Assembly: GCA_964035545.1 (NCBI GenBank)
Contig: OZ037770.1
Location: forward strand, 4,062,662-4,126,661
Length of the DNA: 64,000 nt
Source of the DNA: Bugula neritina
Taxonomy: Eukaryota; Animalia; Bryozoa
Direction: 5' to 3'
Made by a program: the position numbers and the translations under genes. Below are positions 24,301 to 36,300 of the stretch, one piece after another; position 1 is the first letter of the stretch, and each line of letters begins with the position of its first letter. The notes under the pieces are model-generated. The model did no database searches, was not told the DNA's origin, and saw nothing but the letters and a program-made list of their open reading frames with translations.

Positions 24301-27300
24301 CAATATTGAGGAGAAAGTCAGACTGAATGACTACATTATTAACATTAAAGGCAAGAAGAGAACATACCATGCCAACATGCCGAAGAAATATTTTGAGCGG
24401 AGGACGCCTACCGACCCTATGACTGTTGGAGCTGTGATGACTTTAGATGCTGCTGGTACTGGAATTATTGATCACGATAAGGAAAGAGAAGAATGCCAAG
24501 ATGATTTGTTGGACCTGTACAGTAAAAAACAGCAGAGTGATGAGATGGGCTATGTATTTACAGAACTTCAGAATCAAGGTGGAGTCAATCAAAGGAAAGG
24601 AGAATGTTAAAGCCGATTATCTAAGCAGAATTGACTCAGAATTTTAAGTAGTAAGGAGAAATTATCAAGATAATTTCTCTTAGAATGGGGGGTTGTCACA
24701 AATTCTGAGTGTACATATACCTATAGACTTACCGGGTTTTTCCTAATGATTATACAGGAACGTTCATAAGTGTTCTAGACTGATTAAAGAGATGGGTCAT
24801 TGTTCATTGTTGTTGTTTTCATTAGTCATGTTAACTACTGCCCAGCAATGTAAACAAGGTGTTGCGCAATAATTGCGAAATAACCATGGAACTTCCAATG
24901 TTTTGTTTTGTTTTGATTTTCTATCTTAATAATATTGGCATGTGGGGAATGTTTTCTACTAGAATTTTCTATACTGGAATGCTTGAGAATGTTCTAGAGT
25001 TTTTTTTGTTTACTATAGATACTGAGGCAGTTGTGCTTACAAATCAGTTCATTTTTATAAGTTCATCTGTGCATATCTTACTGGAGAAATAAAGTATACT
25101 TATATTCACAACTCTATTTACTCTCAACTGGATTAGCAGGTTGTATGCCAATTGTCTATACACTTCTGACTGCCAGACTTTTCGAACTTGTCACACTGCT
25201 ACCAACAGTTTTGTGACACTCAAAGACAAAAAGCAAAATAAGTGCAACTGAGATGAGAATGCTTTGACACATTTACAATATAGATTGGGACGAATATGTA
25301 ACAAATCATAGTATAAGGGAGGAAGCCAAAATAGAAGCCATCGTAATAGACATGAGGAGGAGACCTCTTCAGTGGTATGAAAATGTGTGCATAAGAGATA
25401 GGGAAGAAGATAATAAAATGGGGGCCTTTGATAAAGATACAGAAAAAGAGAAAAAGAGAGAAGCCAAAAAAAAAGTTAATGGATACAGTGAAGGATGACA
25501 TACTGAAATGTGGCCTCCCAGATAAAGATGTTGACCACAGAATCAGATGACACTCTCTGATAGCACTTGGTGCCCTGCAAAACCACCACCCATCTTGGAC
25601 CACGACGTACTAGTTGAGAAAGTCTGAGACAAAACTCTATAATAGACAATTTGCTGCTTTTCCAAGGCCTTTCAGGGTGTGATACAGTGGTGATAATGTA
25701 ACATGTTGGAAAGAGAGTCTTGGTCAAAAGAAGATGTGATTTCGTGACATTAGTGCTTCTTTTCAGGATGACTGTTCATACAAGCTATCAGGTTTATGCT
25801 ATGTTGCTACAATTATGCAAAGTGCTCATCTATGACATCTACAAGACTAAGGCTTGGGAAACCAAGGTCAGCAATGCTATTTGCGATGTGCCTTTAACTT
25901 ATGTACTTTGCCTCCTACAGATGAAGCTATTGGACAATGTCACCAGAGCACACCTCCAGGTAGCCATATGAAACTGCGGCATTAAACCCACTAGAACATT
26001 GGTAGGTGATAGGGAATCTAATAGAATCTCTTTTCCCAAAAGGAGTAGGAAATGATGTTGTCCTTACACCAGACAGCATTATGAAGTAGACCATGTTAGT
26101 TTATCTGGTGCACACTCGACGACTCTAGCTTTTGGCGATTTTTTACAATTTAGCTGCTACTGTATATAGATTTTTGCCTCAAACTATCAAAATTTTAACA
26201 AATAAAACTGAATAATTAAAGCTTTTCCAATTAAGCATGATTTTCTATGTCTATTCCTAATTTATTATTCCATTGAGATATTATATAGGCCGTGATGATT
26301 CACAAATGTTAAAGTTAAAATTGAACATATTATGTTCAATTTTAACTTTAGCTGAGCAATATGCTGCATCTGTATCTTTTTTTCACTTTCTATTTACTGG
26401 CAATAAGCAATGTTTCTCTTTATATATCTGTTCAGTGTCCAAACAATTATTCAAAAACCTTGTACCATTTCTCTGCACCATATCTGATGTTTTATTGAAG
26501 CAATTCCAATTTTTGAGCTGAGAAACATGTCTCTTGGCTCTTTACTTTGATTCCTTTTTACTGGCATGGCACAAATACATTCTAAAAATGCACATCTATT
26601 TTAATCATCAAAAAAATTTTGATTTTGCAACATAATATAGACTTTATGCCGACTAGATTACGATTTTTTCATAATTGGCGACCATCTTGGATTTCTCAAA
26701 ATGCTCAAGGGTGGCAGGTCCACACCCACCTGGAAACATTTACCTGGACCCTCAAGATAAATAATCAAAAGAGAAAAAAACTTTATCCGAGATTGCGAAC
26801 CTAACCCCCAGTTCTGCCAGACTATAATGGCATATAACTATAAAATTGTGTTATTCCCACATTATTATGAACCATTGCATATATATGTGTAAGTTCAAAA
26901 TATTGCATTTCATATTTTTCAATTATACAATGACACACCGTAATAACACTTGGTATAAGCATATAAAGGTGCCAGATATTGAATGTTTTAAACAACACAA
27001 GACCTGTGACAAACAAACCTCTCAGGTAGAGTAGATAATTCACAGCTCCTCATATTCAACTCTTTAAGTGATGTGAGTGATGACACAACTTCTGGTACTG
27101 TGTTGAGAGGATTCACTCCTATGTCTAGTTTCTCCAACTGAGTCAGCTGGCACAGACTATAATATAAAGTGTGTGACATATATGTGGTCTGCATTACTAT
27201 AATATTTTATACTTTATTCACATTTTCTTTTCAACCAGGTAAAACTATAGACAACTTAACTACCAAGAAACTTATTGTAGCATTGTACATGCAGAGCCTG

Positions 27301-33300: not shown

Positions 33301-36300
33301 ATATACAACTCAACTACCAAGCAACTTATTGTAGGATTGTACATGCAGAGCATGAGAAGTTAACAGTTTATTATAATAACATACAAGTATTCAATTATTA
33401 TATATACTCAGTGTGTGAATACTAATCAACTATACAACTGCTTACTATTATTTACAGTTTTATATCACAAGAATATATAATGACATACCTTAGAATTCAG
33501 TTATTTTCACAATATTACAGACATTATTTCATATAGAATTCAAAAACTTGCATTACACATATTTTTTAAATTGTATAACGACATGCCCTAATTATACTTG
33601 GTAAGAAATTATTTTATGATTTCAAGTGATAAATGTTTCAAACAATACAAAAACTGTGACACACAAACCTTTTAGGTAGAGTAGATAATTTACAGTTCCC
33701 CATATCCAACTCTTTAAGTGATGTGAGTGATGACACAACTTCTGGTACTGTGTTGAAAGGATTCATTTGTATGTCAAGTTTCTCTAACTGAGTCAGGTGA
33801 CACAGACTGTAATATAAAGTGTATGATATATATGTAGTCTGCATTACTATAATAATATTTTATATACTATATTGACATTTTGTTTTCAACCAGGTAAAAC
33901 TATATACAACTTAACTACCAAGCAACTTATTGTAGCATTGTACATGCAGAGCATGAGAAGTTAACAGTTTATTATAATAGCATACAAGTATTCAATTATT
34001 ATATATACTCAGTGTGTGAATACTAATCAACTATACAACTGCTTACTATTATTTACAGTTTTATATCACAAGAATATATAATGACATACCTTAGAATTCA
34101 GTTATTTTCACAATATTACAGACATTATTTCATATAGAATTCAAAAAATTGCATTACACATATTTTTTAAATTGTATAACGACATGCCCTAATTATACTT
34201 GGTAAGAAATTATTTTATGATTTCAAGTGATAAATGTTTCAAACAATACAGAAAATGTGACACACAAACCTCTCAGGTAGATTAGATAATTCACAGCCCA
34301 TGATATTCAACTCTTTAAGTGATGTGAGTGATGACACAACTTCTGGTACTGTGTTGAGAGAAGTACCTCCTATGTTTAGTTTCTCTAACTGAGTCAGGTG
34401 ACATAGACTGTAATATAAAGCATTTAGTATAAATGTAGTCTGCATTACTATAATATTTTATACTATATTCACATTTGGTTTTCAACCAGGTAAGACTATA
34501 GACAACTTAACTACCAAGCAACTTATTGTAGCATTGTACATGCAGAGCATGAGAAGTTAACAGTTTATTATAATAGCATACAAGTATTCAATTATTATAT
34601 ATACTCAGTGTGTGAATACTAATCAACTATACAACTGCTTACTATTATTTACATTTTATAGCACAAGAATATATTATAATGGCATACCTTAAATTATGTT
34701 ATTTTCACAATATTACAGACCATATTTCATATAGAAATAATAAATTGCATTTCACATATTTTTCAATCATATAATGACATAACCTAACAATACTTGGTAA
34801 GGAACTATTTTATGATTTCAAGTATTAAATGTTTCAAACAATACAAAAACCGTGACAAACAAACCTCTTAGGGAGAGTAGATAATTCACAGCTACTCATA
34901 TACAACTCTTTAAGTGATGTGAGTGATGACACAACCTTTGGTACTATCTTGAGAGGATTCCAGCTTATGTCTAGTTTCTCTAACTTAGTCAGCTTACATA
35001 AACTGTAATATAAAGTGTGTAATATATGCTTATATTACACACTTTATATTACAGTCTAGACTACATGTAGTCTCTTGTATCATATATTGACATATTCTGT
35101 ATTCAGCTATAATGTAAAATATGTAGCAAACAATTTTGTTGAGACAGGGTAAGCAGCAAAAAAATGCTATTATGCCATGTTATAGGTGTAATGGGTGCCC
35201 TGTCTATAATTGAGTGATTAGATGTATATGTATAAAGACATCCTGTTAGTTTAATGGATAAGCGTTACTCTACAATGTATTGCTAATATATAGCATGATT
35301 TATAATAATAAATGGTATAATTTGTTATAGCTAATCTGACACAAATTAGCATGTATTTAATACTCTGAAAATATTATATTTTCAAGTATATGGCTACATA
35401 TAATATGCTTATATATATTATGTATTGCAGATAAAAACCTTCTGCATAATCCTACATGTATACATGTACTGTAATAATATGTTGCTTCTATATTCAACTA
35501 CATATAACATGTTTTACTTTATGATAGCATGTGTAACACTACAGTTTCTCACTGTCTAGTTTCTACAACTCGTTCAGCTGGTAGAGATACAATGTTATAC
35601 ATATTACTATAGCTTTATATAGTGCATGATTACATCATGAGTAAGAATATACTTCAGCATTGACTCAGACACATCGTGGGTGATAATTACCACAACTAAA
35701 CTCATTTAACATTTACACAGCTATCATAATAGACACTCACTTGTCTAGACTTGCTCTGTCAGTCAGGTTAGAAACACATAGACACAGGGCTTTACCAGCA
35801 ACCTCTCCAATGTTGTTTGGAATTCTCCCTTCCAGTTTCAGATCTGTGATATAATAACTCCCAACTTCATGTTTCACCTCAGCAGTAGTATATGACTTGG
35901 TATTAGCATACTGTACATCTGACCAGTCTACAGGAGGCTGTCCAGAATGTCTGAACCAGATTTTCATCTTCTCTGTAACATCATACAGTGACAGTGTGAT
36001 TATTACACAGTGCTAGCAAGAAGTTTCTATCATGCTGAAACCTGTCACAATATCTATATATATATATATATATATATATATATATATATATATATATATA
36101 TATATATATATATATATATATATATATATATATATATATATATATATATATATATATATATATATATATATATATATATATCATTTGCTGTGTGTCAGAC
36201 ACCATAGCTATATATGGACATGTCCGACTACTTTAGGTTTATGAAAGTAAAATCTGCAAATTTAAAATGATCTCTAATTCCCTGAAAACAACTGCTTTGT

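Follow-up and report, generated by a model that had tools for sequence, protein, structure and literature searches.

A tandem array of fourteen symmetric LRR exons in a ROCO-caspase-like gene of the bryozoan Bugula neritina, probably diversified by germline recombination and selection

A stretch of 64,000 nucleotides from Bugula neritina (contig OZ037770.1, positions 4,062,662 to 4,126,661; hereafter the window) contains, on its minus strand, a series of short leucine-rich repeat (LRR) exons of equal length and phase. An earlier note on this DNA had seen in them a modular array, open to exon shuffling or exon skipping, and the question raised by the locus is which of these processes diversifies it, and in what kind of gene. 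The parts of the locus, with the array exons designated E1 to E14, are the following:

35741..35967, minus strand: exon 1; ATG at 35967; length 75 codons and 2 bases; donor CAA/GTGAGT, phase 2
34999..35058, minus strand: hairpin of 27 bp, perfectly paired, loop of 4 nt; the polypyrimidine tract, the AG and the first E1 bases form its 3′ arm
34865..35002, minus strand: E1, type A; identical to the first cassette of paralogue L005
34270..34407, minus strand: E2, type B; identical to E11
33669..33806, minus strand: E3, type C
33071..33208, minus strand: E4, type C
32485..32622, minus strand: E5, type D; identical copies in paralogues L001 (two) and L005
31855..31992, minus strand: E6, chimeric: 5′ part from E10, 3′ part from E2/E11; crossover within exon nt 48–81
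31254..31391, minus strand: E7, type C; same as E4
30656..30793, minus strand: E8, type C; same as E4
30062..30199, minus strand: E9, type D; 1 nt from E5
29432..29569, minus strand: E10, type E′; sole GTTTCT donor
28834..28971, minus strand: E11, type B; same as E2
28236..28373, minus strand: E12, type C′; 3–4 nt from C
27619..27756, minus strand: E13, type F; differs by 1 nt from L001 cassette 11
27019..27156, minus strand: E14, type G
29488..34361, minus strand: two tandem copies of a four-cassette block of ~2.42 kb (34361-31911 and 31946-29488)
21360..27018, minus strand: intron from E14 to the Roc-COR exon, 5.66 kb; plus-strand ORFs at 23836-24647
19325..21359, minus strand: Roc-COR exon; acceptor AG 21361-21360, phase 2; 3′ end putative
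16263..17067, minus strand: two caspase-domain exons (17067-16828 and 16565-16263); pentapeptide EASSG

A regular-expression and translation scan of the minus strand between 35002 and 27019 found exactly 14 exons of 138 bp, each coding for two 23-residue LRRs, as the earlier note had stated. All of them are open and flanked by an AG acceptor and a GT donor; they begin with one base of a split codon and end with two, so that the introns on either side are in phase 2. The removal of any subset in frame, also claimed before, holds even for a direct junction of exon 1 to the Roc exon. A pyrimidine-rich tract and AG precede all 14 exons, and the donors are those read earlier, GTTTGT in 13 exons and GTTTCT in E10. 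Exon starts are spaced by 586–630 bp. Translations of single exons matched the Pfam family LRR_4 (‘2 copies’) with scores of 28.0 and 29.9, against a gathering score of 27; the LRR and domain searches were all run exon by exon. The array is absent from the output of TRF because its period exceeds 500, the longest period in that output, and an Rfam scan of the array gave no match.

The array is the predicted LRR domain of a complete gene, formed by an ATG exon, the 14 cassettes, a Roc-COR exon and caspase-like exons, and it would encode a solenoid of about 28 repeats. A homologue of exon 1 (227 nt, 88–94% identical) lies upstream of 17 of the 20 arrays fetched from paralogues, and the order of exon 1, a variable number of cassettes and the Roc exon recurs in paralogues. 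The Roc-COR exon encodes three more LRRs, followed by a Roc GTPase and a COR-like region; the 14 array exons and the acceptor of this exon are all phase 2, so that the LRRs of the array share the reading frame of Roc. The Roc domain (PF08477; residues 77–170 of ORF 21289-19325) reached 34.3 bits, the cut-off being 27. COR-A and COR-B follow in the right order with 17.4 and 14.6 bits, both below their cut-offs, and homologues 38–40% identical carry PF16095. The nucleotide-binding domain is Roc, and the Pfam search returned no match to NACHT. The last two exons present the caspase fold (PF00656, Peptidase_C14; E = 4.9e-10 and 1.5e-7); in their translation the active-site pentapeptide is EASSG in place of QACxG, and the absence of the catalytic Cys indicates that this domain is probably not catalytic. 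The intron that separates E14 from the Roc exon appears swollen to 5.7 kb by retroelement debris: its plus-strand ORFs at 23836-24647 read like remnants of a retroelement integrase, and Pfam gave nothing for them.

Comparison with the rest of the genome (216 Mb) places this gene as a likely member of a large, clustered bryozoan family with the order LRR, Roc GTPase, COR and caspase-like domain. The genome has at least 68 Roc-COR exons; of 135 candidates, 68 were scored, 63 of them open. More than 150 near-identical 138-bp phase-2 cassettes occur in paralogues, from 4 to at least 15 per paralogue, and at least 200 cassette matches were obtained genome-wide. Other clusters of the same genome carry two-LRR exons of 144 bp, and Watersipora has phase-2 two-LRR exons of 141 bp, lengths that bear on the age of the design. 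The closest annotated relatives are Watersipora proteins named ‘MFHAS1 homolog’ in NCBI, one of them with a caspase domain. An alignment query for the array in a further individual, run on JGI metagenome contigs, from which records near this genome may be missing, gave a single, unrelated locus at 44%.

The 14 exons fall into about seven types, and four copies are identical in DNA. The statement that all 14 are open is true, but they are not 14 independent units, and part of their integrity is due to recent duplication. Both causes offered earlier, selection or recent origin, apply: about 6 of 156 family cassettes are broken, leaving ~96% intact, and half of the array is <1% diverged from another copy. 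The introns had been described as duplicated with the exons and highly similar, which stands for the identity of 90–100% seen across the array, with the exception of one 492-nt intron type that is only 67–69% like the others. When each intron is paired with the exon that follows it downstream, intron types match exon types perfectly. Between types, introns differ by 7–10% and exons by 9–19%; exon pS is ~0.11–0.12, near the intron divergence, so that only the hypervariable codons are in excess. A pairing of exons with the introns downstream of them gives the impression that the introns are much the more conserved, and this reading was rejected.

The RNA data are short de Bruijn contigs from three runs, in which the exon bins alone are covered. 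Joints bounded by CT..AC lie precisely at 27756, 28834, 29432, 30199 and 32485. Splicing at the predicted sites is thus confirmed at the family level, and since the contigs join exactly at array exon boundaries, the GTTTGT donor is used in the family; it is the norm genome-wide for this cassette subfamily. Among the joints listed, none corresponds to an adjacent junction of the array itself. An RNA loose end in exon 1 is exact here and also fits 8 of 17 exon-1 copies from paralogues with which it was compared. The RNA evidence is that of the family and is not specific to this locus; expression of this gene and constitutive inclusion of all 14 exons are presumed.

Regulated or stochastic skipping, by which one gene would yield many isoforms differing in LRR length or composition (the combinatorial isoforms of the earlier note), is an unlikely alternative, although several features invite it. 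With phase 2 at every junction, any subset preserves the frame; the donors, with T at +3 and +4, are uniformly sub-optimal; and skipping is documented for LRR exons of brown-algal ROCOs (PMC11378527) and human NLRP3 (PMC6642158). In addition, some RNA joints connect non-adjacent exons, as 32485 to 27756 and 28834 to 27756. The sides of these joints, however, measure just 18–28 nt and lie in conserved exon ends that are identical in 3–50 of the 124 paralogous exons fetched; joints in reversed order, explicable by paralogues only, are also present; and a D-to-D adjacency is already genomic in L001. The joints were accordingly rejected as evidence of skipping. The GTTTGT donor, on its side, is merely inherited by all cassettes of the subfamily.

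The hairpin that sequesters the 3′ splice site of E1 would also favour skipping. It folds with −39 kcal/mol in an 87-nt segment, and the segment 35031-35058 shows 86–96% complementarity to the acceptors of 11 cassettes out of 14, most tightly to the adjoining E1 acceptor. Against this, the hairpin is restricted to 3 of 21 arrays, the other two sharing the A-type first cassette, and its copies differ by one loop base, with an unchanged stem and no covariation. A general docking site was rejected on these grounds. A mutually exclusive cluster of the Dscam type was likewise rejected: no conserved docking or selector element was found, and the symmetric phase-2 exons enforce no exclusivity.

Exchange of cassettes in the genome accounts better for the array. 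The two 2.42-kb blocks are 99.4% identical, with 14 substitutions and one 8-bp indel between them, and their boundaries are sharp and lie inside exon cores (E2/E6 and E6/E10). Because E6 is a chimera of E10 and E2, the sequence comparison gives good support to a single unequal crossover having turned 10 exons into 14. It might be argued that only about 10 cassettes really exist at the locus and that the duplication arose in assembly, through collapse, through expansion or through the tandem merging of a haplotype: a difference of 0.6% is within a plausible allelic range, and for one 200-bp bin (31600-31799) run X1 has no DNA contig. Such a gap in the contigs is no proof, however, and the assembly was built from 132x PacBio HiFi data (27.37 Gb, 2.82 M reads of ~9.7 kb each, QV 53.7; PMC11480708), with reads that span several blocks distinguished by the 14 sites and the indel. 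A chimeric E6 would itself need supporting reads, and higher-order repeats comparable to those of this array occur in L018 and L001. An assembly artefact is thus very improbable.

With a divergence of 0.6%, the 10-to-14 duplication is young enough to be possibly still polymorphic, and the locus would be a handy test case. As a separate observation, the presence of four identical C-type units in one binding surface suggests that the latest expansion was neutral rather than selected.

Exchange appears to extend to the paralogues. Cassettes 98–100% identical are found at different array positions in paralogues whose Roc-COR exons are only ~93% alike. BLAST returned no paralogue tract of ≥200 bp at ≥96% identity, and windowed alignment recovered tracts of 0.65–0.85 kb at 98–100%. 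Two hypervariable patches within the exon are nearly unlinked across the family (r = 0.096, permutation sd 0.05), which points to recombination of half exons. Genomic shuffling by unequal recombination is therefore well supported at the sequence level, and the modular exchange proposed in the earlier note is borne out by the 2.4-kb duplication, the chimeric E6 and the cassettes common to paralogues.

The array appears to vary mainly at residues predicted to face the ligand. In the LRR motif LxxLxLxxNxL, seven codons are hypervariable: x5, x7 and x8 of the first repeat and x5, x7, x8 and x10 of the second. The positions x5, x7, x8 and x10 line the concave binding face in LRR folds, and the seven residues would, judging by the motif, lie on that face. 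Nonsynonymous diversity is 0.42 at these codons, an estimate inflated by their choice on amino-acid entropy, while the scaffold presents πS of 0.12 and πN of 0.059. The ratio of hypervariable πN to scaffold πS is 3.45 (bootstrap interval 3.1–3.9) and the scaffold πN/πS is 0.48, all as pairwise π, which ignores phylogeny and recombination.

We therefore regard the locus, with good though not full confidence, as the LRR sensor of a ROCO-caspase-like family gene, with cassettes diversified in the germline by recombination and by selection at seven codons. The building block would be the ~600-bp cassette, an upstream intron with one 138-bp phase-2 exon of two 23-residue LRRs. The exon core of ~50 nt is invariant and the introns are 90–100% identical, and these would make misaligned recombination and gene conversion possible, so that cassettes could be added, deleted, duplicated and recombined, within the gene and between paralogues, always in frame. 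Selection would retain the scaffold residues and splice sites and favour change at the seven codons, and the outcome would be a repertoire of intracellular LRR sensors that is encoded in the germline and evolves fast. Somatic diversification of the kind seen in lamprey VLRs, with cassettes as donors for cell- or zooid-specific receptors, is suggested by the hundreds of near-identical cassettes with conserved cores, by the mosaic exons and tracts common to loci, and by the same idea raised for brown-algal ROCOs (PMC3341825), but it is the least credible reading, because all features are present in a germline-type assembly and unequal meiotic or mitotic exchange over evolutionary time suffices, because these cassettes, unlike VLR donors, have full splice sites and stand in complete genes, and because no somatic recombinants have been reported in the algal case (PMC11378527).

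The closest precedent for a germline-diversified array is found in the LRR-ROCO genes of brown algae (Ectocarpus and kelps; Zambounis et al. 2012, PMC3341825; Teng et al. 2024, PMC11378527). Both systems share the LRR-Roc-COR layout, repeats of 23–24 residues in equal-sized tandem phase-2 exons, exon duplication and shuffling, clustered and expanded families, and the proposal that they act as immune receptors; positive selection on concave-face residues is also common to them, here with the concave location taken from the motif and with pairwise π. In the algae the LRR exons are reported to be alternatively spliced (PMC11378527). Algal exons, however, have 72 nt and one LRR, whereas the bryozoan ones have 138 nt and two; the host is an animal; the bryozoan gene has a caspase-like C-terminus; and at least 68 Roc-COR exons compare with 9–47 genes per algal species. 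As the host is an animal and its Roc-COR is closest to bryozoan ‘MFHAS1 homolog’ proteins, the likeness is probably convergent, of function and architecture rather than of membership.

The exons of NLRP3 and other NLRs (Hoss et al. 2019, PMC6642158) are also of equal length, with two LRRs each, and removable in frame, and belong to an intracellular sensor tied to caspase signalling. They have 171 bp and alternating RI-type repeats of 28 and 29 residues, against 138 bp and 23+23 residues; their switch is a NACHT ATPase instead of a Roc-COR GTPase; and they recruit a caspase, while the caspase-like domain of the bryozoan gene is fused in cis. Vertebrate MFHAS1/MASL1 and LRRK-type ROCO proteins share the succession of LRR, Roc and COR. 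They are encoded by one or few genes per vertebrate genome, and they are not known to have a tandem array of cassette exons, hypervariable positions in the LRRs or a fused caspase. Lamprey VLR and arthropod Dscam resemble the array in drawing a repertoire from many near-identical cassettes, with variation on the binding face; VLR genes are assembled somatically from cassettes without splice sites, and Dscam uses mutually exclusive splicing through docking/selector RNA pairing.

Modular phase-symmetric LRR exons were known before in vertebrate NLRs, and exon-shuffled LRR-ROCO genes in brown algae. In Bugula the same principle is met in an animal, at a larger scale than in algae and fused to a caspase-like domain, with the footprints of a very recent unequal crossover and of cassette exchange between paralogues; no such system was found described for animals or bryozoans in the literature searched. 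By analogy, a receptor function may be proposed for the gene, and the repertoire would most plausibly act in immunity, allorecognition or cell-death signalling. A bryozoan NLR-/VLR-like ROCO-caspase recognition system of more than 100 genes, evolved independently, with LRR arrays diversified in the germline by cassette exchange and further individualised per colony, zooid or cell by skipping or somatic exchange, is improbable; if true, a colonial animal would use it for immunity, for allorecognition or to control its symbionts. Should the germline family prove to be a receptor repertoire, it would be the third case in which LRR cassettes were independently put to use in diversified recognition, and would offer a route into the little-known immunity and symbiont management of bryozoans.

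An exon scan of the window for the pattern AG, 138 nt and GT with an open LRR-like frame returned exactly the fourteen 138-bp exons claimed in the earlier note, all on the minus strand and running from 35002 to 27019 (E1–E14). Each exon opens with one base of a split codon and closes with two, which agrees with the proposed phase 2-2, and the donors are, as had been read, GTTTGT in 13 of the 14 exons and GTTTCT in E10. A pyrimidine-rich tract and AG lie upstream of every exon, and the claimed LRR identity is borne out by single-exon translations, which match Pfam LRR_4 ("2 copies") above threshold. 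The original observation of the array was confirmed in all details. The repeat search of the window showed a unit of ~600 bp in 14 copies at 26.8–35.1 kb, spaced by 586–630 bp, with a second periodicity of ~2.42 kb. TRF missed the array in the window because its maximum period is 500, and Rfam gave no match on the array. By sequence, the exons group into some seven types, arranged A B C C D E C C D E' B C' F G; E4 matches E7 and E8 exactly, E2 likewise matches E11, and E5 and E9 are 1 nt apart.

The array belongs to a gene with the layout LRR (about 31 repeats), Roc, probable COR and caspase-like domain, whose domain searches were run exon by exon. Its other parts are:

35967-35741, minus strand: ATG exon (exon 1), ending CAA/GTGAGT, phase 2
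5.66 kb, minus strand: intron that follows E14 and separates the array from the Roc exon
starting at 21359, minus strand: Roc exon, with AG before its start, phase 2; three further LRRs, then an ORF of 654 aa that contains the Roc GTPase domain
16263-17067, minus strand: two exons with a caspase domain match, downstream of the Roc-COR exon

Matches to COR-A and COR-B follow Roc in the correct order, both below threshold. The active-site pentapeptide of the caspase-like domain is EASSG in place of QACxG, so this domain is probably not catalytic. The closest named relatives are "MFHAS1 homolog" proteins of Watersipora subatra, with 38–39% identity, and one of them also has a caspase domain. An (AT)66 microsatellite (36050-36181) lies about 80 bp upstream of the exon 1 ATG, presumably within the promoter or 5' UTR. 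Antisense in the 5.66-kb intron, overlapping plus-strand ORFs at 23836-24647 look like remnants of a retroelement integrase, from its C-terminal portion; Pfam gave no match for them. Elsewhere in the window, an LTR-type retroelement has kept its gag-pol ORF intact (50261-54211, plus strand; 1316 aa), with domains for RVT_1, RNase H and both the zinc-binding and the core part of integrase. The regions 10000-14000 and 38000-47000 have a GC content of 44–55%, against about 30% in the rest, and hold ORFs rich in proline and arginine on both strands.

A search of the genome (216,009,554 bases, 321 sequences) with the cassette, exon plus intron, gave at least 200 matches, nearly all on the window's own chromosome at 2.5–6.3 Mb and many of them 90–93% identical across the full 594 nt. 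For the Roc-COR exon, 68 matches were scored among 135 candidates, 63 were open, and they form clusters on several chromosomes; the genome total is at least 68 and possibly about 135. Twenty paralogous arrays were fetched for comparison in stretches of up to 10 kb, and 124 of their cassettes passed a strict filter; truly intact exons make up about 150 of the 156 exon-like segments. An exon 1 homologue, 88–94% identical, is present in 17 of the 20 stretches. The complete genes follow the order exon 1, n cassettes and Roc exon, with n = 4, 4, 4, 4, 6, 7 and 14, and five paralogous arrays have at least 14–15 cassettes each, since they run past the end of their 10-kb stretches. GTTTGT is the standard donor throughout the cassette subfamily. 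That the array is an assembly artefact is unlikely; the published assembly comprises 216.00 Mb in 320 scaffolds plus the mitochondrion, from PacBio HiFi reads at 132x (PMC11480708).

The two-LRR phase-2 exon predates the 138-bp cassette subfamily. In Watersipora, such exons have 141 bp, GTAAGT donors and introns longer than 10 kb. A second big ROCO cluster of B. neritina (chromosome G000 C1:33.8–35.1 Mb and loci L022–L027), with Roc-COR 59–67% identical, has phase-2 exons of 144 bp with two LRRs (25+23 residues) and GTGTGT or GTATGT donors; the genome total of Roc-COR exons takes in this cluster as well as that on chromosome 6.

The recent history of the array can be read from its internal identities. 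When E2..E6 is aligned with E6..E10, a tract of about 2,415 bp is 99.4% identical, differing by 14 substitutions and a single 8-bp indel; on either side of it lie densely differing stretches, the first 47 nt and the last ~57 nt. E6 is chimeric, combining the 5' variants of E10 with the 3' variants of E2/E11. Today's 14 exons are accounted for exactly by a single unequal crossover in an ancestor with 10 exons, where E10 recombined with E2 at a point from nt 48 to 81 of the exon, in its invariant core. An older duplication, similar in character, relates I1-E2-I2-E3 to I10-E11-I11-E12 (97–99% identical). The paralogous locus L018 (G000 C6:5033500-5043499) carries a four-cassette higher-order repeat in ~3 copies, so recent block duplication is common in the family. 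A permutation test covered 125 distinct exons of the family: within an exon, the two hypervariable patches were nearly unlinked (r = 0.096, permutation sd 0.05), and pairs with an identical patch 1 also shared patch 2 in only 8 of 47 cases, so recombination in the exon core is frequent.

Exchange also appears to reach beyond the locus. Identical or near-identical copies of E1 (in L005), E5 (twice in L001, and in L005) and E13 (in L001) occupy other array positions in genes 260–560 kb away. Identity of 98–100% around these cassettes spans about 0.65–0.85 kb and then falls, while the Roc-COR exons of the cassette-sharing genes are only about 93% alike, a difference that points to cassette-scale ectopic exchange between paralogous genes. 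Modular exon shuffling, as suggested, thus has support as a process of evolution in the germline.

Whole-exon pN/pS is about 1.0 within the window, where exon pS (0.12) is near the between-type intron divergence. An apparent much stronger conservation of introns than of exons was rejected as an artefact of matching exons with their downstream, not upstream, introns. Family-wide, seven codons are hypervariable, with 8–15 different amino acids at each: residues 12, 14, 15, 35, 37, 38 and 40 in the unit of 46 residues. In both repeats, they fall on x5, x7, x8 (and x10) of the motif LxxLxLxxNxL. For these sites, which were picked by their own variability, uncorrected distances gave πN of 0.42, against πS of 0.12 and πN of 0.059 in the scaffold; hypervariable πN is 3.45 times scaffold πS (bootstrap 3.1–3.9) and 1.95 times hypervariable πS (1.6–2.4), and scaffold πN/πS is 0.48. 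Because of recombination, a simple tree test does not apply. In the established LRR structure, positions of the x5/x7/x8/x10 type face the concave binding surface. From this structure and a parallel result for concave-face LRR positions in Ectocarpus (PMC3341825), the hypervariable positions are predicted to lie on the concave binding surface.

Transcription was assessed with Logan contigs of sequencing runs placed on positions 27000-32990 of the window. Run X1 covers 29 of 30 bins and is thus DNA, whereas X7, X8 and X14 are essentially limited to exon-bearing bins, as expected of RNA. The RNA joints have CT..AC ends exactly on predicted exon borders, and in one contig of 304 nt, an E14-type exon runs on into sequence resembling the start of the Roc exon, with the joint at the predicted acceptor. 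At the family level, the cassettes are therefore transcribed and spliced at the predicted sites, GTTTGT donors included. Among the joints listed for these contigs, none is an adjacent junction of the window locus. Non-adjacent joints are listed (e.g. 32485 to 27756 and 28834 to 27756), as are joints in reversed order; their sides are 18–28 nt long and identical in 3–50 of 124 paralogous exons, and a D-to-D exon adjacency is present in the genomic DNA of L001. A loose end at exon 1 matches the window exactly, and also 8 of the 17 copies of exon 1 compared among paralogues. The contigs thus speak for expression of the family, not of the window gene in particular, and the joints neither support nor contradict the exon skipping with combinatorial isoforms that the earlier note proposed, which stays a hypothesis.

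The 3' splice site of E1, the first cassette, is buried together with its polypyrimidine tract and AG in a perfect hairpin of 27 bp with a loop of 4 nt (34999-35058; arms 35058-35031 and 35026-34999). One arm shows 86–96% complementarity with the acceptors of 11 of the 14 cassettes, that of E1 among them, and the upstream arm is a cassette acceptor copied in inverted orientation. Only two paralogues, L004 and L005, both with an A-type first cassette, have the hairpin, with an unchanged stem and a single loop-base difference. It was absent from 18 other arrays, so a family-wide mechanism was rejected; the hairpin is read as an inverted duplication specific to one lineage, which might make inclusion of E1 less efficient.

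Equal-length, in-frame exons with two LRRs are also found in NLRP3 and other NLRs, where they have 171 bp (PMC6642158). The nearest described system is the brown-algal LRR-ROCO family, which has 72-nt phase-2 exons with a single LRR each, intense exon shuffling, concave-face positive selection and alternative splicing, and 9–47 genes per species (PMC3341825, PMC11378527). A literature search for ROCO expansions in bryozoans or other invertebrates found nothing equivalent. What distinguishes the bryozoan family from the brown-algal one is its animal host, two LRRs per exon, fusion to a caspase-like domain and larger scale, which makes it the larger, animal counterpart of the algal system.
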